A stretch of 63,087 nucleotides of DNA, filler included, from Octopus bimaculoides (Eukaryota), in assembly GCF_001194135.2 (NCBI RefSeq). It is 6 parts of 5 records of this genome, joined end to end, with 100 filler letters (N's around TTAATTAATTAA, not from the genome) between each part and the next. Parts side by side here need not be neighbours in the genome. Positions count along the whole stretch, not along the records: positions 34,525 to 57,129 come from NC_068989.1; 5 more parts are not named here. One strand, 5' to 3'. A program made the translations under genes and the position numbers. This document shows positions 14,736 to 57,129 of this stretch, piece by piece. How positions within the stretch are numbered: position 1 is the stretch's first letter; the number at the start of each line of letters is the position of its first letter. The notes beneath the pieces were generated by a model that saw only the letters and a list, made by a program, of their open reading frames with translations, did not search any database and was not told where the DNA came from.

Positions 14736-16296
14736 NNNNNNNNNNNNNNNNNNNNNNNNNNNNNNNNNNNNNNNNNNNNNNNNNNNNNNNNNNNNNNNNN
14801 NNNNNNNNNNNNNNNNNNNNNNNNNNNNNNNNNNNNNNNNNNNNNNNNNNNNNNNNNNNNNNNNNNNNNNNNNNNNNNNNNNNNNNNNNNNNNNNNNNNN
14901 NNNNNNNNNNNNNNNNNNNNNNNNNNNNNNNNNNNNNNNNNNNNNNNNNNNNNNNNNNNNNNNNNNNNNNNNNNNNNNNNNNNNNNNNNNNNNNNNNNNN
15001 NNNNNNNNNNNNNNNNNNNNNNNNNNNNNNNNNNNNNNNNNNNNNNNNNNNNNNNNNNNNNNNNNNNNNNNNNNNNNNNNNNNNNNNNNNNNNNNNNNNN
15101 NNNNNNNNNNNNNNNNNNNNNNNNNNNNNNNNNNNNNNNNNNNNNNNNNNNNNNNNNNNNNNNNNNNNNNNNNNNNNNNNNNNNNNNNNNNNNNNNNNNN
15201 NNNNNNNNNNNNNNNNNNNNNNNNNNNNNNNNNNNNNNNNNNNNNNNNNNNNNNNNNNNNNNNNNNNNNNNNNNNNNNNNNNNNNNNNNNNNNNNNNNNN
15301 NNNNNNNNNNNNNNNNNNNNNNNNNNNNNNNNNNNNNNNNNNNNNNNNNNNNNNNNNNNNNNNNNNNNNNNNNNNNNNNNNNNNNNNNNNNNNNNNNNNN
15401 NNNNNNNNNNNNNNNNNNNNNNNNNNNNNNNNNNNNNNNNNNNNNNNNNNNNNNNNNNNNNNNNNNNNNNNNNNNNNNNNNNNNNNNNNNNNNNNNNNNN
15501 NNNNNNNNNNNNNNNNNNNNNNNNNNNNNNNNNNNNNNNNNNNNNNNNNNNNNNNNNNNNNNNNNNNNNNNNNNNNNNNNNNNNNNNNNNNNNNNNNNNN
15601 NNNNNNNNNNNNNNNNNNNNNNNNNNNNNNNNNNNNNNNNNNNNNNNNNNNNNNNNNNNNNNNNNNNNNNNNNNNNNNNNNNNNNNNNNNNNNNNNNNNN
15701 NNNNNNNNNNNTAATTAATTAAGAGTGAACTGGTCGTCATTAAAATCTTTAGCCAAAAATATTCAGGGGAAATAACTTTTCTTAATTTATTTAATGGTCG
15801 GAAAGTGCCCTGCCTGTGGTCGTCACTGGAAAGAAGAAAGGCAGAAATATCTTGATATTCTTGTCTTATAGGTTTGGTCTGAATGCTAGAAAGTGATCCA
15901 TGCTAAAGGTACCCCATGGCAAGGTGATGACTCGGTCATTTCAGAACAGGTACAATGCATTGGAAAAATTTCCATTTAGTTTCCATTCTATCCAGTTTGA
16001 CTAACAAGACTTGAATCAGCTCAAGTTTATGGTAAAGGACACTTATGCAAATTACAGTGCAGTGGAATCGAACCCATAACCACTTGATTGCAAAGCAGGC
16101 TTCTTAATCATACACCCACCAGTGTACTGCATGGGGGGGATGGGATTCAGCAGCAAATACTGGATAATTGCCGGATGCTAAAAGTCAGGGAAATGTTGTC
16201 TTGGAGGAATAAATACCATGGAACATGTGGGTACAAGAGTTGAGGTCAAATGTCCAGAAGAAACTGGATTAAATTATCATTCCAAGCTGTGTTTAA

Positions 16297-17171
16297 CCCT
16301 TTAGCATTTAAACCAACCATATCCGACCCAAATATTCTACCTGTTCTTATGTTTAAACTGGCTAGATCTGGCCTCTCACACATACCTTACAATGTAATTC
16401 TAAAAATATACAATTACATCATTGAAATCTCAAAGCTATGAGACAATGCAGGATTACTTCAAAACAATGTGAATAAATAAGCATTACATTAGACAGAGTG
16501 AAGGCACATGGCTCAGTGGTTAGAGCGTCAGGCTCACAATCATGAAGTAGTGAGTTTGATTCCTGGGTCAGGAATTGTATTCATATGGTGAAGGCGCATG
16601 GCTCAGCGGTTAGAGTGTCAAGCTTACGATCGTGAGGTTGTGAGTTCGATTCTCAGACGGGGCTGCGTGTTGTATTCTTGAGCAAGACACTTTATTTCAC
16701 ATTGCTCCAGTTAACTCAGCTGTAGAAATGAGTTGCGACATCACTGGTGCCAAGCTGTATCGGCTTTTGCCTTTTCCTTGGATAACGTCACTGGTGTGGA
16801 GAGGGATGGCTGGTATGCATGGGCGATTGCTGGCCTTCCATAAACAACCTTGCCCGGACTTGTGCCTGGGAGGGTAACTTTCTAGGTACAATCCCATGGT
16901 CATTCGTGACAGAGGGGAGTCTCCTGATAACTCAAGGCTATGAACAAAGACAAGCTGGTGCCAAGCTGTATCAGCCTTTGCCTTTCCCTTGGACAACATT
17001 TATGAGGGGAGGCTGGTATGCATGGGCGACTACTGATCTTTCACAAACAATCTTGCCCGGACTTGTGCCTCGGAGGGGAACATTCTAGGTGCAATCCCAT
17101 GGTCATTCGTGACTGAAGGGAGTCTTTATCTTTTTTTTTACATTTGACAGAGTAATCTGAATGCTAAAGGG
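16297..17171. mobile_element. piggyBac-type MITE with a compound tRNA-derived SINE (about 16500-17125) inserted
   Basis: TTAA-CCCTTTAGCATT ... AATGCTAAAGGG-TCAA ends; SINE A box TGGCTCAG(T/C)GG and B box GTTCGATTC; flanked by the duplicated TTACATT(A/T)GACAGAGT. Confidence 0.7.
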
Positions 17172-17248
17172 TCAAACACTAAGTCTAGATTAATTAGTTG
17201 TTTGAGGTTGGATAAAAGTCATTTGATTTAAGCTCCTCTCTGTTCTAG

Positions 17249-17342
17249 GTCTATATATCATTTGACTATGTTGGCTGTACCACATCTGGTTGCTACCAAA
17301 GGAAATATTGTCAATGTATCGAGTGTTAATGGACTAAGATCT
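17249..17342 (+). CDS. SDR exon with the catalytic Ser region
   Basis: AG/GT; SIYHLTMLAVPHLVATKGNIVNVSSVNGLRS with GxIVNVSS; phase 2 to phase 0. Confidence 0.92.
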
Positions 17343-18870
17343 GTAAGTATTTCTTCATGTCTAACATTCAAATACTGCTGATAAGGTACAAAACCTGCTG
17401 AAATCACAGGATACAGTAGTTTCACTACCAGTGCTTAACCTCTCATGTCTACTACCAATATCTCTGTGTTTATATACACTAGACGTTGATACAAGAAGCT
17501 TTCTTGGGACAAATTCTGCAGTATTATGGTGCTCTAAAAATAGGTAAGAGTCAGCAACATGAAGAGCATCCAGCTGTAAAGCATTACTACAATAATGTGT
17601 ATTCATACAGCCCAGAAAATAGCCCTCGTCACATTTAGGTTGAATTTTAAGTACTTAATAACAAGTTCGTTTCAGTTACACATTACTTTAAAGTTTCATA
17701 AGTGCACAACACGTCCACATCATCAGATGTACAGTCAGAGTGGTGAGAAATTAAAAGAAATTTTTAAATGGTTTCTGTGTGGCATAGGTGCAGGAGTGGC
17801 TGTGTGGCAAGTAGCTTGCTTACCAACCACATGGTTCTGGGTTCAGTCCCAATGNNNNNNNNNNNNNNNNNNNNNNNNNNNNNNNNNNNNNNNNNNNNNN
17901 NNNNNNNNNNNNNNNNNNNNNNNNNNNNNNNNNNNNNNNNNNNNNNNNNNNNNNNNNNNNNNNNNNNNNNNNNNNNNNNNNNNNNNNNNNNNNNNNNNNN
18001 NNNNNNNNNNNNNNNNNNNNNNNNNNNNNNNNNNGTGGTTAGGGGCATTCGGCTCACGATCGTAAGGTTGTGAGTTCGATTCCTGGCGACGCGTTGTGTC
18101 CTTGAGCAAGACACTTTATTTCACATTGCTCCAGTCCACTCAACTGGCAAAAATGAGTAGTACCTGTATTTCAAAGGGCCAGCTTTGGCACGCTAAGTGT
18201 CACGCTGAGTCTCCCTGAGAACTACGTTAGGGGTACACGTGTCTGTAGGTTGCTCAGTCACTTGCACGTTAATTTCACGAGCAAGCTGTTCCGTTGATCG
18301 TATCAGCTGGGACCCTCGTCGCCGTAACCGACGGAGTGCTCCTCTCCTAAAGGCAGTGCTCCAGCATGGCTGCAGTCAAATGACTGAAACAAACAAATAA
18401 AAGAATAAAAAGTGAGAATATTTTCGCCTCTATCAGTCATTTCAGATCACCTAGTTTTTGCTTTCATTTGATGGTATTCATGGTAGACATCCTGTACTCT
18501 TGTACTCTTTACACTATTATATTAGTGTTTTTATTGTACTCCTGCACCTTTCATTAGTATTGTTACTGTACTCTTGTATGTTTCACCTTTGTCCTTGTTT
18601 CTACTGTTGCTCGAGGCTTCTTGAGTGTGAATAATGCTGGGTAGCTTCTTCAATATGTAGTGATAGGTAGATCCTTGGGTGGCTGCTTGAGTAGTAGTCA
18701 TTAGGTTATTCTTTGTATATGCAGTGCTGATAGGATCCTCTATAATTTGTACATCAATACTTTCATATGTGAACCATGATTTAATTTAATATAATACCTA
18801 ACACCACGAGTTGTTTCCTCTTGACGATACTCATTCTGCTTTTGTTTTGTTTTGTTTTTTTTCCCCATAG

Positions 18871-34424: not shown

Positions 34425-34529
34425 NNNNNNNNNNNNNNNNNNNNNNNNNNNNNNNNNNNNNNNNNNNNTTAATTAATTAANNNNNNNNNNNNNNNNNNNN
34501 NNNNNNNNNNNNNNNNNNNNNNNNACTTT

Positions 34530-36083
34530 ATGAATATTATTTCCAAACACCCATCCATTGTCGTCTACCATAAAGAGGCTATGAGCACAATCAAACACTG
34601 CCACGACAAGAAACACTTTCACATAATATCTTTCCATAAGGAACATCCTTCAAACCAACACAGCTTTCAAATGCTGAAAAATATACTGAGAAACAACATC
34701 GCAAAACCATACGACATGGCAGCCATGAAGTTATTTACTCCTTATGGATTTTGCAAATATCTGACTCAGAACGATTCATTAAGATGGGTAGTATGTGCTA
34801 ATAACATAAACTCGGAGCAGCAAACAGCTTTACTTCAAAAGCTAACTGACAAAGACTACGATAACACTGATGACGACATATCCGAAGCTGAATCTATAAA
34901 CAGAACAAAAACAGTTAGAGGCGATAAATATAACTTTATCAAAAAAATGATGAGGCAGTGTAACAGCACCGACCTCGGAGATATAATTCACTACTGTAAT
35001 AACTCCCCTAAACTGTCTCACAGAACAACATGGTCCAACATCTACAGAAACACAGCGAACATTCAAACAATAATATCAGCAGCAGCCACAGAAACAAATA
35101 TTGAAACTCTAAGCACACCCATATGGCAGCAAATCAACGATAAAAAAAACCTTTTCATGAATAATATGAACAATTATCATGACATACAAACATCACTAAA
35201 CATATATGAAGAATGGTTAAATCACCATAACATAAATCCACAAACATTTGCCCAGCAAACGTTTGATATCTGCCATAAAATTAATCCTAAAGTAAACGGA
35301 TTACACATCACAGGCGTCAGCAACTCCGGAAAAAGCTACATTCTCAGGTCGATTCGCAACGGATTAATGAACTGCGGAAGAATGAGATGTCAAGCGAGTG
35401 ATAATTTCACATTCGGATCATGTATAGACAAGACTCTTATCTATACAGACGAGATGTGGTTCACGACTAACAATATAGAAGAAGCTAAATGCATTTTGGA
35501 AGGCACACAAACATACATTAACATAAAACATCAGAACGAACGAATTCTGAAAAGAACACCATCACTATCGACTAGCAACACACCGCCATGGAGAGTAGTG
35601 ATGCAAGACGAAGACGCTCTGAAAAATAGACTATACTTATTCGAAACGAGAGCACCTATGCCACAACTTAAAGAATGGGGAAGAGTTGAATTAAACCCGC
35701 TTATGTGGATAACTATATGGAGAGATTTTATAAACAAATACGTGACAAACACATACAACAAAACGTTCGTCTCTGAAAATACACCGAAAAAATCCACACT
35801 ATACAACGCAGAAAACACGACATACACTTCACCAAAGAAACGGTCTGAATTGACAAATAAAAAAAGGAAGCTAGAAGATATGCTATACACACCACAAAAC
35901 ACCAAAACTCCTTGGGAATCCCCAAGATATTCGCCTACAAAGAAATGCAAGCTAGACGAAGAACAACAAGCCCAAAGCTGTATTTACCACGGAGAACCGA
36001 TCACATGCATTTTCGATAGTGATGAAGAAGACTTCGAAACACAACAACCCATTGAATGGTCGCCATTACCAGACGACATATGA
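34530..36083 (+). CDS. Endogenous parvovirus-like NS1, copy A (HUH nickase plus SF3 helicase); 5' end hidden in a gap
   Basis: 517 stop-free codons; HFHIISFH (HUH), YGFCKYL (catalytic Tyr helix), GVSNSGKS (Walker A), LIYTDE (Walker B), KCILEG-TYINIKH (B'), STSN (motif C). Confidence 0.92.
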   Translation: MNIISKHPSIVVYHKEAMSTIKHCHDKKHFHIISFHKEHPSNQHSFQMLKNILRNNIAKPYDMAAMKLFTPYGFCKYLTQNDSLRWVVCANNINSEQQTALLQKLTDKDYDNTDDDISEAESINRTKTVRGDKYNFIKKMMRQCNSTDLGDIIHYCNNSPKLSHRTTWSNIYRNTANIQTIISAAATETNIETLSTPIWQQINDKKNLFMNNMNNYHDIQTSLNIYEEWLNHHNINPQTFAQQTFDICHKINPKVNGLHITGVSNSGKSYILRSIRNGLMNCGRMRCQASDNFTFGSCIDKTLIYTDEMWFTTNNIEEAKCILEGTQTYINIKHQNERILKRTPSLSTSNTPPWRVVMQDEDALKNRLYLFETRAPMPQLKEWGRVELNPLMWITIWRDFINKYVTNTYNKTFVSENTPKKSTLYNAENTTYTSPKKRSELTNKKRKLEDMLYTPQNTKTPWESPRYSPTKKCKLDEEQQAQSCIYHGEPITCIFDSDEEDFETQQPIEWSPLPDDI

Positions 36084-36229
36084 CAACCAAAGAACATTAC
36101 TAATTACTTATACTCTAGACAACTGCATGCAAGTAAACTAAAATTTTATTTTAGAAAAGATCCTTTTTTTACTAGAGCTTTTCATTTATTGGACACTGAA
36201 CATTTTTTCGATTTTTCTTGTTTTTAATA

Positions 36230-36651
36230 CGCATGCGCAAGTTTTCACAAGCGATTTTTCACTGCCAGTGATGTGCGCGTGCGGAAGTTCCTTAATAAAC
36301 AGTGTGTAAACCTATATATCTTGTTTGTTATTATTATATATATATATATATATATAAGAAGAAGAAGAAGAAGAAGAAGATGAACGCGCTCGCGCGACCT
36401 GTGCGCCAGTGGAAAATGTAAGTTGTGAGACGCGCGCATGCGCGAATGTTTCACAAGCGGTTTTTCACTGGTGTGTATTGAATAAGGTAAGAAATTAGAC
36501 GGGGCACCTCTAGCACCAGCGCTGGCTCGCTTTCATACTATTCTTTTCTATTCTAAACCATCGCCGAAAATTCACTGCAACAAGTGCTTGTGCGCCAATA
36601 TCTACTAACGCGCCCGACAAGGGCGCCCTTGTCGGGCGCGTTAGTAGATAT
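36230..36651. other. GC-rich repeat and hairpin cluster downstream of NS1-A (candidate viral terminus or origin)
   Basis: Direct repeat 36230-64 / 36435-70; imperfect hairpin 36406-36471; AATAAA at 36294; perfect 54-bp palindrome 36598-36651. Confidence 0.7.
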
Positions 36652-40620: not shown

Positions 40621-41269
40621 AATTAAACAAAGCAAAGATAAAGCTTTAGTGCACTGCTGTCACAATTAGTCACTGTATGAGTTTTCTCTTGTGGCTACAG
40701 GTGTATTGTGTAACCTTGAGAGGTGTGCACAAAATAAACACTTAGCAAAGTTTATTTCCAGTAGTTTAAACTGGAGACAGCCTACTTTCAATTCTGGACA
40801 GGACTAAACTTAAGTTGTCGGATGCCATTTCGTAGTTATTTGCTTTCCACAAATACACAATTTCTAAAATTGATCATAGTTTTATGGATTTTTCTTAGAC
40901 AAAAAATGCACCTGCATTTGTTGATGGCTTCTTGGAAGAAATCTTCAAAATCATGGTCTAAGTCAGAATCAAAGAAAAATTCATTCATAAAGATATCGAT
41001 GGTTAAGTAGTTGGAGGTGATGGTAAGGACAATGGCAGTGTTTACAGTGATAGTGACAGTGATGTACCAAATGGATACCATCGTCCTTGATTGGCCGAGT
41101 TTAAAGAAAATACTGGCCAAAGTAGAGAAAACAGAATTCAGTGATTACAGGAAGTTGGAAAAACAAGTGAAGGAAAGACAAAAAATACTATATAGAAGTT
41201 ATTGTGCAATGCCGAGGACTATGACAATATTTATAGCTAAGTAAATTAAATTGAATTCCTAGGGGAGGG

Positions 41270-41345
41270 GGGATGAAATAAGGGATGTTTTCATCCCACC
41301 GAAAGCGCTGCTGATGGTATAAGAGGTGCCCTTACTAGTTTTCAC
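41270..41345 (+). promoter_or_regulatory. Candidate promoter and left end of element B
   Basis: 9-bp stem GGGATGAAA/TTTCATCCC (41270-41297); TATAAG at 41318, 72 nt upstream of the ATG at 41390. Confidence 0.5.
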
Positions 41346-41389
41346 AGCAGACCAGGGACAGCGAAAATTAGAATATTTCACTGGTACAA

Positions 41390-41793
41390 ATGAAGTATTT
41401 AAATCACGTGACATCAGTCTCTCGTCCATTCCAACACATGCCGGCGATACGTAAACATCTAGCTCGACATAGATACAGCAAGGAATATAACATTCCAGGA
41501 CATGAATTTACTGGGCCAGGAACAGATTTATGCAAAAGACTATACGACACACCATTAAACAAACTAGACGCTGCAGCAAAAGCACATGACATCAACTACG
41601 CCAATCCTGATAAAGATACTTGGGAATCAGACAAAGTCTTCATATCTGAAGCATCCACGCAGGAGCCGCCGGCATACTCTCCGCTGGGTCAATCGCAGCT
41701 AAACATTATATTGGACTTGATAAAGTCTTCAGACCAGACAGTGCTGCTAAAGTTAGTTCTTTCTCTATTCTTGATTATTGTCGCAATCAAAAC
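41390..41793 (+). CDS. Parvoviral VP1-unique region with a phospholipase A2 domain, split by a one-base frameshift near 41655
   Basis: IPGHEFTGPGT (Ca loop) and PLNKLDAAAKAHDINY (catalytic HD..Y). After ESDKVFISEAS the domain continues in the -1 frame as HAGAAGILSAGSIAAKHYIGLDKVFRP, which is the frame of ORF 41794. Confidence 0.85.
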
Positions 41794-43967
41794 ATGTCCG
41801 ACACTCAGAATGCAGATTCTCAAGGCGAAGCAGGCAATGGCTGGGCAGGACAAACACACGGAGGAAGCAGATTGCCAGCTGCAAGCGAAAACTTCATGCG
41901 GCAATACACGATACAAAGAATGTTTCGGAACATGGTGAAAACGACAAAAATGAATGACGCAATAGTTAAATTCGACAAGTTCGAAGGAAACAAAGAGGCT
42001 TTCAGAAGAGTCGGCGACCAATGTTACGGCGTTGTCAAATCAGAAGACTACATCGTCCCATACTGGCTAACATCATGGATTAAATCTATTCAATTCGAAC
42101 AAGTTTTAAAAACAGCAACTTCATACAGGATAGACAGCATCGGATTCCAAATTACAGACATCATAGGAGGCAACAGGCAACAGCTACAGCCAGCAGCCAT
42201 GGACACACCAGTCAACAACTTCAACATGAGCGACAACGACGACAAAAATACATTCGACCAAGCAGTGAAGTCGGAAGAGTTGAAACCATACACGTGGGTG
42301 TACAGACTCAGAGATGAGAACGAGATAACTTGGGATGAGACGATCACCATCAGCGCAGCGGCAGACACCTTCACACACAACTACACGCCGCAGACGAATT
42401 ATTTCATGAACATTCTATCGAAACATCCGAACGTAACGATATACCACAAGCGTTCCATTTCGGCGATAAAACATTGCTACGACAGACCACACTTTCACGT
42501 AATATCATGGCATAAAGACCATCCGACAAACCTACATAGCTTTTCACAACTTAAAAATTTGTTAAAAAACGACCTCGAAAAACCGTACAACATGGCAGCT
42601 ATGAAGCTATTCACACCGTATGGATTCGCAAACTACCTAAACAAAGACAACTCCATCAGATGGGTAGTATCTGCTGACAACATCAAAACACTCGGACAAA
42701 AGATGATGTATGAAAAGCTCACATGCAAATCATTGAATACAACAACAAATTACTCACAGGAATCAGACGAAGACAAGCAACTCATTAACAACAAGACTGT
42801 AAGAGGATCTAAATATGATTTTATTAANNNNNNNNNNNNNNNNNNNNNNNNNNNNNNNNNNNNNNNNNNNNNNNNNNNNNNNNNNNNNNNNNNNNNNNNN
42901 NNNNNNNNNNNNNNNNNNNNNNNNNNNNNNNNNNNNNNNNNNNNNNNNNNNNNNNNNNNNNNNNNNNNNNNNNNNNNNNNNNNNNNNNNNNNNNNNNNNN
43001 NNNNNNNNNNNNNNNNNNNNNNNNNNNNNNNNNNNNNNNNNNNNNNNNNNNNNNNNNNNNNNNNNNNNNNNNNNNNNNNNNNNNNNNNNNNNNNNNNNNN
43101 NNNNNNNNNNNNNNNNNNNNNNNNNNNNNNNNNNNNNNNNNNNNNNNNNNNNNNNNNNNNNNNNNNNNNNNNNNNNNNNNNNNNNNNNNNNNNNNNNNNN
43201 NNNNNNNNNNNNNNNNNNNNNNNNNNNNNNNNNNNNNNNNNNNNNNNNNNNNNNNNNNNNNNNNNNNNNNNNNNNNNNNNNNNNNNNNNNNNNNNNNNNN
43301 NNNNNNNNNNNNNNNNNNNNNNNNNNNNNNNNNNNNNNNNNNNNNNNNNNNNNNNNNNNNNNNNNNNNNNNNNNNNNNNNNNNNNNNNNNNNNNNNNNNN
43401 NNNNNNNNNNNNNNNNNNNNNNNNNNNNNNNNNNNNNNNNNNNNNNNNNNNNNNNNNNNNNNNNNNNNNNNNNNNNNNNNNNNNNNNNNNNNNNNNNNNN
43501 NNNNNNNNNNNNNNNNNNNNNNNNNNNNNNNNNNNNNNNNNNNNNNNNNNNNNNNNNNNNNNNNNNNNNNNNNNNNNNNNNNNNNNNNNNNNNNNNNNNN
43601 NNNNNNNNNNNNNNNNNNNNNNNNNNNNNNNNNNNNNNNNNNNNNNNNNNNNNNNNNNNNNNNNNNNNNNNNNNNNNNNNNAACGAAATACCAAATGCAA
43701 ACGACAGACCACTTTTCACCAGAGAGAAAAAAGAAATTCAGTGCAATTAAAAGAAAACTGATTGAAGCCATCGAAACATCACCAAATTATGAACCAGCAA
43801 AAAGACAATGCCAATACGATCCAGACCAACAAGCACAAGCATGCATTTACCATGGACGTATAACTCCGTCGTCCTGTAACTTCGGCGGAGGAGCAGCAGA
43901 CGAAGACGACCAACAACCAATAACTGAAGACTGGAGTCCATTACCGATGATAGACGAAGACATATGA
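41794..43967 (+). CDS. Element B main frame: capsid-like N-terminal fragment fused in frame to NS1 (middle hidden in gap 42828-43681)
   Basis: Gly-rich GEAGNGWAGQTHGG, then RQYTIQRMF, YIVPYW and FEQVLKTATSYRIDSIGFQITDI (jelly-roll strand B-D pattern), then with no stop HFHVISWH and YGFANYLNK. The post-gap tail QQAQACIYHG...QQPITEDWSPLP matches copy A. Confidence 0.82.
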
Positions 43968-44125
43968 CTACAAAATACATTCACATTTATAAGACAAAGA
44001 GAAATCACTGCACTCAACGGTCAGAGAATTTAAAAATATACAAGAGACATTTTCTTCCAACGCATATGGGAACATATGAACACTGATTTTTTCCTTGATA
44101 TTTACTTTTAATAATTCCCTTGAAT

Positions 44126-44390
44126 TCGCGTGTGCGCGTTCTAACTTTTAAACTATCGCTGTCGCTGGTGACAGGTCGCGTGTGCGCGCAACATGNNNNN
44201 NNNNNCGCGTGTGCGCGTTCTAACTTTTAAACTATCGCTGTCGCTGGTGACAGGTCGCGTGTGCGCGCAACATGAACTCTAACTTACACCCACCCTCCTC
44301 CTTCTGTTGCAACTATTGCTATTTTATATTCTTATATGAATCAATAAACAATGTTTATGAACTTATATTGTGTATTATTATTATTATTAT

Positions 44391-44425
<35 letters not shown>

Positions 44426-44481
44426 TATTATATATATTATACTAATATACTAATTATGACGTCATCACCTGTCACCAGGTG
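44126..44481. other. GC-rich motifs downstream of NS1-B (candidate right end)
   Basis: CGCGTGTGCGCG repeats; 12-bp inverted repeat CTGGTGACAGGT / ACCTGTCACCAG; AATAAA at 44343; ATGACGTCAT palindrome at 44456. Confidence 0.6.
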
Positions 44482-45042
44482 GGACTGGGAAGGGATTATC
44501 CATTACGANNNNNNNNNNCACCTGTCACCAGGTGGGACTGGGAAGGGATTATCCATTACGAATTGCTTGAACGGAACCAAACGGTCAACGCGGAACTCCA
44601 TGTTCAACAGATGGAATGACTCAACATGGCTATTAAAGAGAAAAGACCTAATCGGCAGCATGGAGTTCTTTTGCTGCACGACAACGCCTGCCCATATATT
44701 GCCAATATGACCAAGGAAGCCATTCAAACGCATTTCTAGGAAGTGCTGCCACACCCGCCGTACTCTCATGATTTGGCACCAACGGATTTCCACCTCTTTC
44801 AAATGCTATGCACTGAGTTCCGTTCAATACTGATGCTGAATTGAGAGCTTGGTTGGATGAATTTTTCGAGTCGAAATCAGGTGATTTCTACCAACGAGGT
44901 ATTGAAAATCTTGTTGAATGTTGGGAAGAAGTTGTAAACAACAAGGGTGAATACATTATTAATTAGTTGTTATTTCTTATCAAACCTTTAAAAAAATTCA
45001 AATTTAAAAAAAAACGGCAGGAACTTAGTTGCCAACCCAATA
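44480..45042 (+). mobile_element. 5'-truncated mariner (DD34D) element with right terminal inverted repeat
   Basis: WDWEGIIHYELLERNQTVN, LLHDNA.P, HPPYSHDLAPTDFHLF and FYQRGIENLVECW; ends GGAACTTAGTTGCCAACCCAATA. Confidence 0.88.
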
Positions 45043-48712: not shown

Positions 48713-49579
48713 GTGGCTGGTGCCAAACAAAGGAAAGTAAACCTAAGTAACACGGAGAAGCATAAGCAAATGATGAAAAGGGAGGGTCACGGCATTATTG
48801 CAACCCCTCCCCAAAGCTTTTTGGAAAGAATAGAGAAAGAAACAATAATATTCAAGACATACAGCACAAAAGAAAAAAAAATAGAGTTCGTCTCAGAGGC
48901 CGAGATCGAAAAGTGCCTGAAACCGATACTGGAAAAAATTACCTAAATCACCAGAGACAAGCGTTATGCTACTGTAGAGGTGAGAATGGAGTCAGAGGAA
49001 GCTGCCCGACTCCATTCTGTAGAGCCTCTGGGAACGGAAAATGTGGTTCTCTTACCACTGTACATGGGTAGGAGAACATCACAAATAACAATAAAGAACA
49101 TTTCCCATGAGGTGGACCCAGAGTGGCTAGTTGCCGCAACAACAATGGGCCTGGAAGACAGGATTACAATAATGGACGCAACTGTGATTGAACCAAGACT
49201 GCGATACGGCCAGGCCCTAAAAATAACAATTCAAGCGGAACAGGCCACACTGGAAGAAATAATTGAAAGTTTTGAGGTTGGTGGCACACGACTAGTCGTG
49301 TCAGTGGAAGGCCGCAAACCTCGTTGCTTCCAGTGTGGCAAGAAGGGTCACCTCAGGGCGAACTGTAATCAGAAGATAGAGGAAGAAAAAACTAGCCAGG
49401 AAGAAACAGAAGCAAAAAGGAAGGATTCAGAAGTAGTGAAAGAAGAACAGGAAACGAAAAAGGAACGAACACCAGTGCCAGTGGAAAAGGTTGGAGAGGG
49501 TTGGACTACTGTGTCCAACAAAAGAAAGTTAAAACAGCCCTCCCCAACGGAAGACAAGCAAAAAGGAAAAAAAAACTAA
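48713..49579 (+). mobile_element. Non-LTR retrotransposon ORF1-like protein with a CCHC zinc knuckle (L1/Tx1-like), broken
   Basis: GRKPRCFQCGKKGHLRANC; GWTTVSNKRK; stop codon at 48944. Confidence 0.7.
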
Positions 49580-53029: not shown

Positions 53030-54955
53030 CTGTTGCGGGCATGGATGATTGCTAGTGGCAATCCCCCAAACATCATCATCACTGCTGCACTTAAGAATAA
53101 TGGCTTTCACAGAACCACTGATCAGATAGAGCAGAAGAAGAATGAATTCCTCAGCTCATATGCACTCATCAGACCACACATTGACACCCTAGATGTCATA
53201 ATCGAAAACCATTGTGGAAAGGCTGATAAGGATGGAGAGGAGGAAAAGGAAAAAACACCCGGAAGTCTCTTTCACCAAGTGGCTCCTCCAAAGAATGGAT
53301 CACCCACTCCTGTGAATGACCAGGTAGAAAAGGATAGTGGAGCCAAGGAAGCAGCAAATAGAAGCCCCTCTGTGCCGGTGGTCCTACAAAGGAAAGGAGC
53401 CCTCACCCCAATAGATAACCAGAGGAAAACAGTACCCACCACAAGAAAAGGAAGAACGGAACACAGGTATAAAGAGGTAAAAGGAAAATGTAAACACCGA
53501 AACCCCATTCCACCAAACAAAAAGTAGAAAATCCCAAGGTGGATCCAATGCCATCCAAGACCCTACAGGAAAGAAGAAATTAGGAAGGCACCNNNNNNNN
53601 NNNNNNNNNNNNNNNNNNNNNNNNNNNNNNNNNNNNNNNNNNNNNNNNNNNNNNNNNNNNNNNNNNNNNNNNNNNNNNNNNNNNNNNNNNNNNNNNNNNN
53701 NNNNNNNNNNNNNNNNNNNNNNNNNNNNNNNNNNNNNNNNNNNNNNNNNNNNNNNNNNNNNNNNNNNNNNNNNNNNNNNNNNNNNNNNNNNNNNNNNNNN
53801 NNNNNNNNNNNNNNNNNNNNNNNNNNNNNNNNNNNNNNNNNNNNNNNNNNNNNNNNNNNNNNNNNNNNNNNNNNNNNNNNNNNNNNNNNNNNNNNNNNNN
53901 NNNNNNNNNNNNNNNNNNNNNNNNNNNNNNNNNNNNNNNNNNNNNNNNNNNNNNNNNNNNNNNNNNNNNNNNNNNNNNNNNNNNNNNNNNNNNNNNNNNN
54001 NNNNNNNNNNNNNNNNNNNNNNNNNNNNNNNNNNNNNNNNNNNNNNNNNNNNNNNNNNNNNNNNNNNNNNNNNNNNNNNNNNNNNNNNNNNNNNNNNNNN
54101 NNNNNNNNNNNNNNNNNNNNNNNNNNNNNNNNNNNNNNNNNNNNNNNNNNNNNNNNNNNNNNNNNNNNNNNNNNNNNNNNNNNNNNNNNNNNNNNNNNNN
54201 NNNNNNNNNNNNNNNNNNNNNNNNNNNNNNNNNNNNNNNNNNNNNNNNNNNNNNNNNNNNNNNNNNNNNNNNNNNNNNNNNNNNNNNNNNNNNNNNNNNN
54301 NNNNNNNNNNNNNNNNTAGAAAAGGATAGTGGAGCCAAGGAAGCAGCAAATAGAAGCCCCTCTGTGCCGGTGGTCCTACAAAGGAAAGGAGCCATGGTGG
54401 AGTTGCTGTATACATCCGTGACGTCCTCACACCCCAGGTCTTACTGTCATACTCAAATTCGGTATGCGACACCTTAATTGTATACATAAGACAACATAAT
54501 ATAGTCATATGCAATACATATTGCCCACCGGATACTCCAAACCACATAGGCAAATTTGAAGATTGCCTCACTAGAATTTAAAAAATTCTCATGAAACTGG
54601 AACACCATGTGACCATATTTCTTATGGGTGATTTCAACTTCCCCAACGTCAAATGGTCCGAAGGTCTCATGCTCTAAGGAATGACTCATTGCAAACAAGC
54701 ACAGGTGGAATCCCTGCTAAAGCTTACCAATGCCCTATTCATGGAGCAAGTTGTATTCAGACCAACTAGGGTGAATAACATTTTGGATCTCTGCTTCACG
54801 AACAATATGGACATCGTTCATAATGTGAAAGTGACACCGACATTAGTCTCGGATCACAACATAATAGAGCTGTCTATGTTTGGGCTGAAAGTAGCCAGAG
54901 ACGTACAGCCTAAAGGAAGCACCCAAAATCTCTCCAATCTAAAATTCCACAAAGC
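53030..54955 (+). mobile_element. CR1-group LINE 5' part: ORF1 remnant and APE endonuclease
   Basis: HGGVAVYIRD, MGDFNFPNVKW, PTRVNNILDLCFTN and SDHNIIE. Confidence 0.8.
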
Positions 54956-55114
54956 TCGTAAGTTTGCGAGCCAACCCTTGGAGGGCAAGGAGATTTTGTT
55001 TCAACCCACTTATTGTGGGAAAAAGTTGACGAGAGCTTGGGTCTGCAGGTTGCCACCCAGGAGAGTGGCTAGAGGACACTATCTGCCAGGGTCTGGGTGG
55101 CATGCAAAGGAGCT

Positions 55115-57129
55115 ACAGACTTAATTATCAAGGTACCCTCACCTGATGACCTGAAACTAAGACCAATAATAGCAGGTCCAGCATGTGAAACCCACCGCCT
55201 CAGTAGCTTCTTGGACACTCTACTGAAACCCTTCCTAAAACACATCAAGAGCTTTATAAGGGATGACCGGGACATGCTAAACTGCCTCCCATAAATGGTC
55301 AATGAGAAAACACTACTAGTATCCTTCGACATAGTCAACCTATATTCAAACATCCCACACTTTCTAGGAATAGAGGCCATCACATTCTGGTTAGACAATT
55401 ACACCTATGAACTCCCCTCTCGCATTAAAAAAGAACACATAATAGAAGGACTAAGATTTATCTTAGAAAATAATTATTTTATATTTAACAACGACTACTT
55501 TCGACAAAAATCGGGGACTGCACCTTCTTATGCTAACCTGGTAATGGGCTATCTCGAGAACATAAAAGTGGTGTTATTGTATGGGGCTGAGACATGACGT
55601 ACAACAGTTAAGTCAAATAAGCAAATACAATCATTCATCAACAGGTGCTTGCGTAGTATACTTAAAATCAGATGGCCCGAACACAAAAGCAATATGGAGC
55701 TATGGCAAAAAAATGAACTCAGCTTTGTCACACAGCATGAAAATTAACATACTGATAGCAGACTTAGTTAGGATAATGAACAATATCTCCCCACTATGCG
55801 AACTGTATGAAACAAAAAAACATATACAGAACTTCATGCACCACATGCAGTTCTCTGGATATGATCAGAAAGATAGGGTTTGAGTATACAGGGGAGCTAG
55901 AAAGAGGTTAGATAATATTATACGTAATGATACCAGTGGTACCTGCCCTAGATATAGTAACAAAGAATGGAATAGGATACAAAGAATTTGTGACAAAGCC
56001 AACAGGGCGAACACGTGGTATAAAACCGACAGATATCAAGGAGTGATGTTTGTAGAGGCCACAGCCCATGGCGAACTAGCGCGTATGTTTAGAAAAGCTC
56101 TGAAGGAGTCCAAACTCAACATTAAGATTGTTGAAAAGCCAGGGAACTCTATCAGATCACAACTATGTAGGACGTACCCCTTTGAGAATACCATATGTAC
56201 CAATGATAACTGCATGGTATGTAGGATTAGCCCTGGCATTAACTGCAGAAATAGAAATGTAGTTTACAGCATAAATGCATGGAAATGTAGTTTACAGCAT
56301 AAAATGCATTGGAGGGTTAAAGGCAATAAAGAAAGAGAACACTCGAGAAATATGGAAACTCCTTTTCCACCTACATACAAAACAACCGGAAAAGATATCT
56401 CGATGACTGCTTCATCCTCTGGAATGAAAGTATAGAAAAACTCAACGAATTCCAAACACTTCTAAATGGAATAAGTGAAAACCTCCAATTTACGATAGAA
56501 TACAACAATCAACAACTACCGTTTTTAGATACCCTCATAAAGAAAGTTGGGAACAAGATAGAGACAGATATCTATTATAAACCCACTGACTCGAAAAAGC
56601 ACCTGCCACTTGATTCTTGCCACCTGAGACACACCAGGATTAATATCCCATTTTGTTTAGCCAAAAGAATATGCACTATAGTATCAGATGCAGACACCTG
56701 TTATAAACGACTCCAGGAATTGAATCGAAAATACGATCCAAAGAGTACTTAAATTAAATGCACAAGAGACAACCAAGACCCAAGAAGGAAGAAAAATTTA
56801 AAACCCTGCCTTACATCTCCACACACAACCCACATAACAATGAGGCCTTCAACAATATACTCCACAGCACAGCTCTGCTCAAGAAAGACCCAAAGATGAA
56901 CCAAATCCTTAAAACACATACAATCATCAAAAGTAAGAGGCAACCAAAATCAATGGAAAAGATTTTAACCCAGGCCAAATTACACTCAACAATAACCACT
57001 AAACCTACAGTAAAAATATGCGGGAAACCCAACTGTGGGATTTGTGTCAACGTAATAGAAGGATCAGAACATCGATTAGAACAAGGCCATAATTTCACAG
57101 TAAAAACTAATTTTACATGTGCATCAGAG
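55115..57129 (+). mobile_element. Penelope-like element fragments (RT and C-terminal regions) with a short RTE insert at about 55570-55700
   Basis: KLRPIIAG...LVSFDIVNLYSNIP...FRQKSGTAPSYANLVMG; MFVEATAHGELA...IVEKPG; LPYISTHNP...KRQPKS...CGKPNCGIC; RTE piece LLYGAET..NRCLRSILKIRWP. Confidence 0.8.

Follow-up and report, generated by a model that had tools for sequence, protein, structure and literature searches.

Capsid-first parvovirus-like elements in cephalopod-derived sequences and a probably deletion-derived capsid-NS1 chimera in Octopus bimaculoides

The window considered here is a stretch of 63,087 nucleotides of Octopus bimaculoides DNA (NCBI RefSeq assembly GCF_001194135.2), assembled from six parts; the part from NC_068989.1 (34525-57129) contains two separate parvovirus-like copies, A and B, only 7 kb apart. 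In copy B, one open reading frame (ORF) leads from a piece of capsid protein (VP) into the replication protein NS1. Copy B is probably a deleted, defective endogenous copy of a parvovirus-like lineage whose native layout is VP1 followed by NS1, rather than a designed fusion; the lineage is known so far only from cephalopod-derived data (O. bimaculoides, O. vulgaris and Acanthosepion pharaonis are the named sources). The native layout would comprise, all on one strand, a promoter-like region, VP1 (about 610 residues, with an N-terminal phospholipase A2 (PLA2) domain), a short spacer, and NS1 (about 520-570 residues, with an HUH nickase and a superfamily 3 (SF3) helicase). In copy B, a single deletion would have taken roughly the final 60% of the gene for the capsid, together with the greater part of the spacer and its TATA-like motifs, and would have ended a few codons before the NS1 ATG, with the frame kept by chance. 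The resulting frame, starting at the Met at 41794, passes through 126 capsid residues and a nine-codon leader into NS1 with a complete N-terminus, and a separate frameshift splits the PLA2 part of VP1 from the remainder. The homology boundaries, the absence of the segment, the frameshift and the gene order of the relatives are direct observations. We infer that the deletion represents decay, or a defective genome captured at integration, rather than adaptation, and that the lineage replicates, or once replicated, as a virus.

An earlier note, made from the window's sequence, had reported a stop-free frame combining capsid and NS1 motifs; the frame from the ATG at 41794 indeed stays open for 344 codons, up to the N run that begins at 42828, and all the motifs quoted are found at their residues and positions (Table 1). 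In an exhaustive HMMER search of the 344 residues against 1.84 billion representative proteins, the 50 matches form two disjoint sets, 19 lying only within residues 1-143 and 30 only within residues 144-344 (the 50th looks spurious); no protein in this collection bridges the VP and NS1 halves. Examples are P0025, matched over its residues 123-239, for the VP set, and P0014, matched from its residue 5 (query residue 150), for the NS1 set. Searched with residues 1-210, 5.8 billion clusters yield one match, the O. vulgaris hypothetical protein P0001 (268 residues; E 5e-45), and no other protein with the junction was found there; the NS1 side matches NS1 N-termini with E-values down to 1e-56. The homology to both VP and NS1 is far beyond chance.

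After the motif ...DI(I/V)CGE, the VP homologues go on with WLTKNNEEVF... for about 369 residues, whereas copy B reads NRQQLQPAA-MDTP. The last 20-25 or so nucleotides before the NS1 ATG of copy B can be aligned with the leader that precedes NS1 in relatives, so that the 3' part of the segment encoding residues 127-135 is homologous to this leader, read through in frame. From these alignments, residues 1-126 can be assigned to VP, residues 127-135 to the read-through leader, and residues 136 onward to a complete NS1 N-terminus. The proposal of capsid sequence fused in frame ahead of NS1 thus stands for residues 1-126; it had been drawn too wide, as a capsid part of 144-204 residues with jelly-roll strands up to E or G, since VP homology covers these 126 residues only, and roughly strands A-D. 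Likewise, the junction lies at residues 127-135, and at neither of the two places suggested for it, M145 or the end of FTHNYTPQ; the perceived likeness of LRDENEITW..FTHNYTPQ to strand G of adeno-associated virus (AAV) is spurious, as this stretch belongs to the N-terminal domain of NS1, where it is conserved.

Residues 136-204 (MDTP...KPYTWVYRL...LRDENEITW...FTHNYTPQTNYF) are in fact a normal NS1 N-terminus, at which the full-length NS1 proteins of relatives start (P0002, P0003, P0014). These begin 15-30 residues before the conserved (K/T)PYTW(V/I)YR motif (P0002, 514 residues; P0003, 568 residues), and both M136 (ATG 42199) and M145 of copy B sit at this start position. The visible codons of NS1-B (211 and 95) are without breaks, the C-terminus resuming at 43683-43967. 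In an alignment of 13 homologues (A9), H100 and F101 of the nickase motif are invariant and H102 is nearly so; the tyrosine equivalent to Y281 of copy B is present in all but one of the 11 sequences covering its column. An AlphaFold2 (AF2) model of the N-terminal domain of NS1-B reaches a mean predicted local distance difference test score (pLDDT) of 71 and a predicted template-modelling score (pTM) of 0.68; a Foldseek search with it gives no significant match, the best being the HUH initiator RepB of pMV158 (E 0.1). By sequence, the NS1 profile matches AAV Rep40/68 with an E-value of 1e-12; a scan of IMG/VR with the same profile returns no relative.

In copy A, the 517 visible NS1 codons (34530-36083) are likewise without breaks; tblastn with P0003 covers residues 74-555 of that protein at 50% identity. 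It carries the HUH motif (34614-34637) and, as expected of Parvoviridae, an SF3 helicase homologous to those of parvoviruses, recognised by Pfam (Parvo_NS1, E 2e-16) and by its Walker A motif GVSNSGKS (35313-35336). Copies A and B are homologous, as had been noted: from residue 204 of the copy B frame onward, they share 54% identity over 141 residues (E 3e-48), and their C-termini are 40% identical. At the edge of the piece, copy A does read nnnnnAC TTT ATG, and it does continue upstream in frame as had been supposed; the missing part amounts to about 73 residues of ordinary NS1 N-terminus, however, and has no bearing on whether A is a fusion.

On the capsid side, tblastn with the intact 608-residue VP1 P0025 gives two matches in copy B, each in a different frame, one to residues 1-68 of the query and the other to residues 68-238 (40% identity, E 4e-39), and none beyond; copy B thus retains the first 40% or so of the VP1 gene, with one frameshift. 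The deletion has removed the last 369 or so of about 608 codons, stop included, and the aligned parts contain no internal stop codons. The gene opens with MPAIRKH at 41438, and its PLA2 domain lies just 5' of the fusion ORF, in another frame; in P0001 and in P0025, this domain and the homologue of residues 1-126 form a single ORF. Residues 1-126 are 56% identical to residues 117-242 of P0001 and align with residues ~113-239 of the relatives' intact VP1 proteins (606-621 residues). The ATG at 41794 corresponds to an internal Met conserved in all full-length VP1 homologues and, to judge from other parvoviruses, is probably a VP2-type start.

Beyond the PLA2 domain, the capsid protein is difficult to place by sequence: Pfam finds PLA2 only, and no capsid family, in the fusion ORF and the full-length VP homologues, and a PDB sequence search with P0025 gives no match. 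A VP profile compared with PDB sequences finds the AAV VP1 unique region (VP1u) with an E-value of 6e-7, and its positions 215-272, including the FEQVLKTATSYRIDSIGFQITDI / FEQVL..ITDI stretch, align weakly with an AAV capsid segment, which we take to be alphaA, betaD and betaE. Copy B would thereby keep roughly strands A-D and lack strands E-I, a mapping based on the order of secondary structure elements and the weak AAV alignment, and not on the AF2 model of P0025, which is poor (pLDDT 41, from 19 homologues). With this model, all of the top 50 PDB matches in Foldseek are nonetheless parvovirus capsids (AAV, bocaviruses, canine parvovirus (CPV), Penaeus monodon metallodensovirus (PmMDV) and a beetle densovirus), with E-values of 1.6e-6 to 5e-4 and template-modelling scores (TM) of only 0.2-0.3, which gives moderate support to a parvovirus capsid identity of VP.

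Table 1. Locations of the features discussed, along the window for the two O. bimaculoides copies and along the respective sequence for relatives; residues are those of the copy B fusion ORF.
Feature	Location	Strand	Basis or remark
NS1 of copy A	34525..36083	+	Pfam Parvo_NS1 E 2e-16; tblastn with P0003; 70% identity to P0002
Region downstream of NS1-A	36084..36651	+	block alignable with copy B to ~36280; AATAAA 36294-36299; (TA)n(AAG)n microsatellites; palindrome
Control-like region upstream of VP1-B	41271..41331	+	9-bp stem-loop; TATA-like TATAAGAG; GGTGCC
VP1 remnant of copy B, broken gene	41438..42171	+	tblastn with P0025; alignment of 19 VP homologues
PLA2 core of VP1u	41480..41608	+	Pfam PF08398 E 1.4e-8, above curated cut-off
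Ca-loop FTGPGT	41507-41524
Catalytic HD in HDINY	41585-41599
Fusion ORF of copy B	41794..42827	+	344 codons, open into assembly gap; begins at conserved internal VP1 Met
Capsid-derived domain, residues 1-126	41794..42171	+	Gly-rich stretch and predicted first jelly-roll strands
Gly-rich stretch	residues 11-25
RQYTIQRMF	residues 36-44; 41899-41925
YIVPYW	residues 86-91
FEQVLKTATSYRIDSIGFQITDI	residues 101-123
Nine-codon linker, residues 127-135	42172..42198	+	DNA alignments of junction with VP and pre-NS1 regions of L001-L006
NS1 of copy B, M136 to stop	42199..43967	+	854-N gap 42828-43681 conceals middle
PVNNF	residues 139-143
M145	ATG 42226
Nickase motifs of NS1-B	42490..42645	+	HUH H233-F-H235 42490-42498; Tyr motif YGFANYLNK, Y281 conserved Tyr
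HFHVISWH	residues 233-240; 42490-42513
YGFANYLNK	residues 276-284; 42619-42645
Region downstream of NS1-B	43968..44190	+	aligns by eye and MAFFT with region after NS1-A
L001, O. vulgaris chromosome	VP1 10001-~11800; NS1 at ~12500		NS1 an N-terminal fragment
L002, Logan run	VP1 1-303; NS1 379-2085		C-terminus of VP1
L003, Logan run	VP1 upstream; NS1 367-1911		C-terminal fragment of VP1
L004, Logan run	VP1 228-2054; NS1 2092-3645
L005, Logan run	VP1 251-2116; NS1 2275-3867
L006, Logan run	VP1 337-2157; NS1 2666-3778
L007, ENA 76.7-kb contig	VP1 7523-9336; NS1 9470-10778
L008, Acanthosepion pharaonis scaffold	VP1 15305-17447; NS1 from 17552
L009-L012, Logan runs SRR8281678, SRR8281665, SRR29271462, SRR8281675			VP1 broken; NS1 broken
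L013-L015, Logan runs ERR12921338/40/41	VP1 182-2017; NS1 from 2113

The capsid-first order asserted in the earlier note is seen in every related element recovered: copy B and 10 further distinct elements all have VP1 immediately before NS1 and on its strand. The 10 come from an O. vulgaris chromosome, an A. pharaonis scaffold, a contig of the European Nucleotide Archive (ENA) and several Logan runs, and among which the order NS1 then VP is never seen. Described Parvoviridae have NS on the left and VP on the right of a monosense genome, or the two on opposite strands. Where both ORFs are intact they are separate, with a spacer of 37-160 nt; fusion as the layout of the lineage is thus not upheld, as the relatives have complete, individual VP1 and NS1 genes. 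Of the three options that the earlier note had left open, a new layout holds for the lineage and a defective one for this copy, whereas nothing supports a domesticated fusion gene.

Two side observations concern these relatives. An identical VP fragment with broken ORFs recurs in four runs (L009-L012), and an identical intact VP1 of 611 residues in three (L013-L015); such recurrence is expected of germline copies, or of a virus common in one study population. L002 covers the C-terminus of VP, the spacer and the whole of NS1, and closes with a poly(A) run some 280 nt beyond the stop of NS1 (2086-2363); it may be a transcript, hence an RNA spanning the VP 3' end and NS1.

The capsid-first order could also be non-viral, being either the VP-to-NS junction of a concatemeric or circular form of an NS-then-VP genome, or an ancient rearranged insertion that was multiplied in its hosts. 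Parvoviruses can integrate as concatemers, which speaks for such an origin, as do the lack of identifiable termini that would fix the ends of the elements and the fact that most of the related sequences come from host-genome data, several of them broken. However, the 37-160 nt between the VP stop and the NS1 ATG are too short for the two telomeres that a concatemer junction would contain, which makes such a junction unlikely; no VP follows NS1, either in the 5.3 kb after copy A or in the 0.5-0.8 kb after NS1 of L003, L004, L005 and L009; and a conserved promoter-like block precedes VP. A dead rearranged insertion, moreover, would not show the strong purifying selection seen in both genes. We consider an origin of this kind unlikely.

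This selection is apparent in all pairs tested, among them A against B, the VP of copy B against O. vulgaris, and L004 against L005 and L006: the proportion of nonsynonymous differences (pN) is 0.18-0.40, against saturated synonymous ones (pS of at least 0.75). For the VPs of L004 and L006, the ratio of the corresponding rates (dN/dS) is about 0.05. Since synonymous sites are saturated at such values of pN, both genes have diverged under strong purifying selection, as functional genes. For the same reason, copies A and B, with 54% amino acid identity and saturated synonymous sites, are independent acquisitions; local duplication is ruled out. Divergence from relatives is similar on the VP and NS1 sides of copy B, as a single copy should show.

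The elements reside in host DNA. Viral sequence is contiguous with host chromosomal sequence in the O. bimaculoides piece, where microsatellites and retroelement-like ORFs accompany copies A and B, and relatives are embedded in Mb-scale host scaffolds: an O. vulgaris chromosome of 84 Mb, and one of 1.4 Mb from A. pharaonis. Coding integrity is lost in copy B, whose VP1 has one frameshift and one large deletion. Both features are those of an endogenous viral element.

If copy B is such a decayed copy, its capsid piece, with only the predicted first jelly-roll strands, could not form a capsid, and the fusion product, if expressed, would amount to NS1 carrying a tag without function at its N-terminus; the fusion ORF is probably decay only. 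No sign of selection for the fusion is seen: the junction is unique, and the capsid piece would be only part of a jelly roll. Domestication would require that selection keeps the VP-NS1 fusion as a cellular protein, for example as an antiviral or DNA-binding derivative of NS1 tagged at its N-terminus with capsid sequence. The ORF is open over its 344 codons, the C-terminal piece of NS1 is open too, and the predicted model of the NS1 N-terminal domain folds confidently, all of which would suit a host gene; exapted parvoviral Rep/NS genes are also known from other animals (PMC10384997, PMC12300724). A junction conserved in homologues would mark such a gene, but it occurs in no other protein among the 1.84 billion representatives; the adjoining VP1u is frameshifted, the predicted jelly roll incomplete, and the TATA-like region that precedes NS1 in relatives has been removed by the deletion. 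Domestication is accordingly very unlikely in our assessment.

An exogenous defective or satellite lineage might normally encode the N-terminus of VP fused to NS1 as a real fusion protein. The preserved frame would fit this, as would the frequent occurrence, in populations of parvoviruses, of genomes with internal deletions, which integration could capture; the single occurrence of the junction, in no second sequence of the databases searched, and the frameshift in the same copy do not, and we regard a viral fusion protein as extremely improbable.

An assembly artefact, in which the junction or the whole arrangement of A and B results from mis-joined reads of similar elements, would be favoured by the five N runs in the piece, by the 854-N gap in NS1-B, by exact duplications flanking two 10-N gaps, and by the many related copies that the genome probably contains. 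The junction of copy B lies, however, within 1.6 kb of uninterrupted sequence (41200-42827), no repeat common to the VP and NS1 sides is found that could cause a collapse there, and the two sides are about equally diverged from relatives; an artefact is quite improbable. The duplications themselves lie just downstream of copy B (44127-44195 equals 44206-44274, and 44466-44507 equals 44519-44560); such duplications around 10-N gaps are typical artefacts of scaffolding or gap closing, and the local assembly quality is moderate.

Against copy B as a deleted copy of a capsid-first lineage weigh several points. An in-frame junction without a stop in the leader is also what a selected fusion would show, the chance of the frame being kept at random being about one in three. 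The structural model of VP is poor (pLDDT 41; TM 0.2-0.3), the middle of NS1-B, helicase included, is hidden by the 854-N assembly gap, and, with scaffolding artefacts near copy B, the junction is known from the assembly alone. Finally, as no termini were found, the native VP-first layout rests on gene order, spacing and selection, and not on a complete genome; an exogenous virus is thus unproven.

Compared with known systems, the lineage resembles Dependoparvovirus (AAV) in its NS1/Rep, with an SF3 helicase (AAV Rep40/68 is the best PDB sequence match, E 1e-12) and a putative HUH nickase, and in its VP1, where a Gly-rich stretch and an internal Met that is conserved come after the N-terminal PLA2 domain. 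As in monosense Parvoviridae in general, all coding capacity, about 3.5-3.7 kb, is on one strand, and the capsid model matches, at its low confidence, parvovirus capsids only. Unlike these, it has VP before NS1, with a spacer of only 37-160 nt; no terminal repeats or hairpins were found, Pfam has no capsid family that matches its capsid, PDB sequences match it in VP1u only, and IMG/VR yields no relative. Internally deleted parvovirus genomes have a large internal deletion and keep the upstream control region and the replication gene; the deletion in copy B also spares these, but is seen only in a chromosomal copy. Endogenous parvoviral elements (EPVs) likewise lie in animal chromosomes beside retroelements, some broken, with several within a few kb.

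A parvovirus-related NS1-like sequence from O. bimaculoides is already listed in the supplement of Francois et al. 2016 (PMC5013282). That report gives an NS1-like fragment only, with no gene order, whereas both genes and their order are seen here, with several copies intact; compared by eye only, the fragment printed there is unlike the NS1 described here. Swazi bat-associated megaparvovirus 1 and its relatives (PMC13426907) also have a PLA2-containing cassette upstream of NS1, but their VP is listed after NS1 and the PLA2 is on a separate protein, whereas in the present lineage NS1 comes after the entire capsid gene, PLA2 included. Reviews and taxonomy papers (PMC11357303, PMC11125579, PMC13426907) give only NS-left/VP-right or ambisense layouts. 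No description of a capsid-first parvovirus or of a cephalopod parvovirus was found in the literature, of which coverage was incomplete, so that this is absence of evidence only.

That cephalopods carry, and are perhaps still infected by, a deep-branching parvovirus lineage with reversed cassettes, VP1 with its PLA2 preceding NS1 on one strand across a spacer of tens of bases, is a proposition to which we would give an even chance. If true, it would be a new genome architecture for the family, with a timing of replication- and capsid-gene expression different from that of described parvoviruses, for which models of early and late expression build on an NS cassette that comes first or lies on the opposite strand. 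It would raise the question of how NS1 is expressed, whether by way of an internal promoter inside the terminal part of VP or on a transcript that both genes share, and would widen the range of PLA2-bearing parvovirus-like elements to include cephalopods. In these genomes, copies that were acquired independently stand in clusters, such as A and B here and the two or more in L007. The caution to draw is that finding a chimera in frame within an endogenous element gives no evidence of a designed fusion.

The region upstream of VP1-B contains a stem-loop with arms at 41271-41279 and 41289-41297 (DNA fold z -2.4), followed by the TATA-like TATAAGAG at 41318-41325; the GGTGCC block, together with the sequence around it, can be aligned with what precedes VP1 in L001 and L004-L006. 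The GGTGCC/TATA-like block is a putative promoter. In relatives, TATA-like motifs are also found at the VP 3' end and in the spacer before NS1, a region lost from copy B, and here too a promoter role seems plausible. An origin of copy B as a retro-copied spliced mRNA was considered on account of a donor-like GGTGAGT on the VP side in L006 and an AG before the NS1 leader in L001, and is ruled out, as these motifs are not conserved in L004 and L005 and copy B retains an untranscribed promoter-like region upstream.

A stem-loop of 7-10 bp occurs tens of bases upstream of the GGTGCC block in copy B (41271-41297) and in L004 (~54-71), L005 (~89-106), L007 (~7333-7375) and L009 (~76-99); the sequence of the stem differs in each element and L006 shows none, so that its position may be conserved though its sequence is not. 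At the other end of the capsid gene, the C-termini of full-length VP1 (L004, 2035-2054; P0025, P0063-P0065, P0067) all read ...G(K/R)(F/Y)IN(K/M), encoded by an A/T-rich, ATAAA(C/T)A-like string directly before NS1; the conserved C-terminus may also act as a TATA-like or polyadenylation signal.

Searches for terminal hairpins or inverted terminal repeats gave none in any of the contigs; for L004-L006, each with its two ends on one contig, inverted alignment of these ends reaches at best the scores of shuffled sequences. A proposed mirroring of AGAGGTGCCC before VP-B by GGGGCACCTCT after NS1-A is ruled out, the blastn match being only 10 nt (E 0.43). The regions downstream of NS1-A and NS1-B give no match to each other in blastn; the one after NS1-B may be a 3' UTR or a terminus. 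In the otherwise AT-rich block that aligns between the two copies (Table 1) stand GC-rich motifs, 150-220 nt after the NS1 stop in both: CGCATGCGC / GTGCGCGTGCGG in A (36225-36290) and CGCGTGTGCGCG, twice, in B (44120-44190), where a GC-rich 13-mer is directly repeated (44126-44138 and 44176-44188). A role in protein binding or as terminal elements is conceivable for these motifs. At 36598-36651, 0.5 kb after the NS1-A stop, lies a perfect palindrome of 54 nt (ATATCTACTAACGCGCCCGACAAGGGC / its complement), which is unique in the window and has no counterpart after NS1-B or elsewhere; it could be the remnant of a terminal hairpin or an unrelated host or transposon feature.

Two weak matches mark the retroelement remnants in the piece, at 48980-49579 and 54681-55124: a gag-like ORF that contains a CCHC zinc knuckle (E 0.003), and part of an endonuclease/reverse transcriptase (E 0.004). 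The ENA contig L007 holds at least two different parvovirus-like elements within 10 kb (117-866, 5036-5332 and 7523-10778); clustered independent insertions of this kind could reflect an integration hotspot or a piRNA-cluster-like region.

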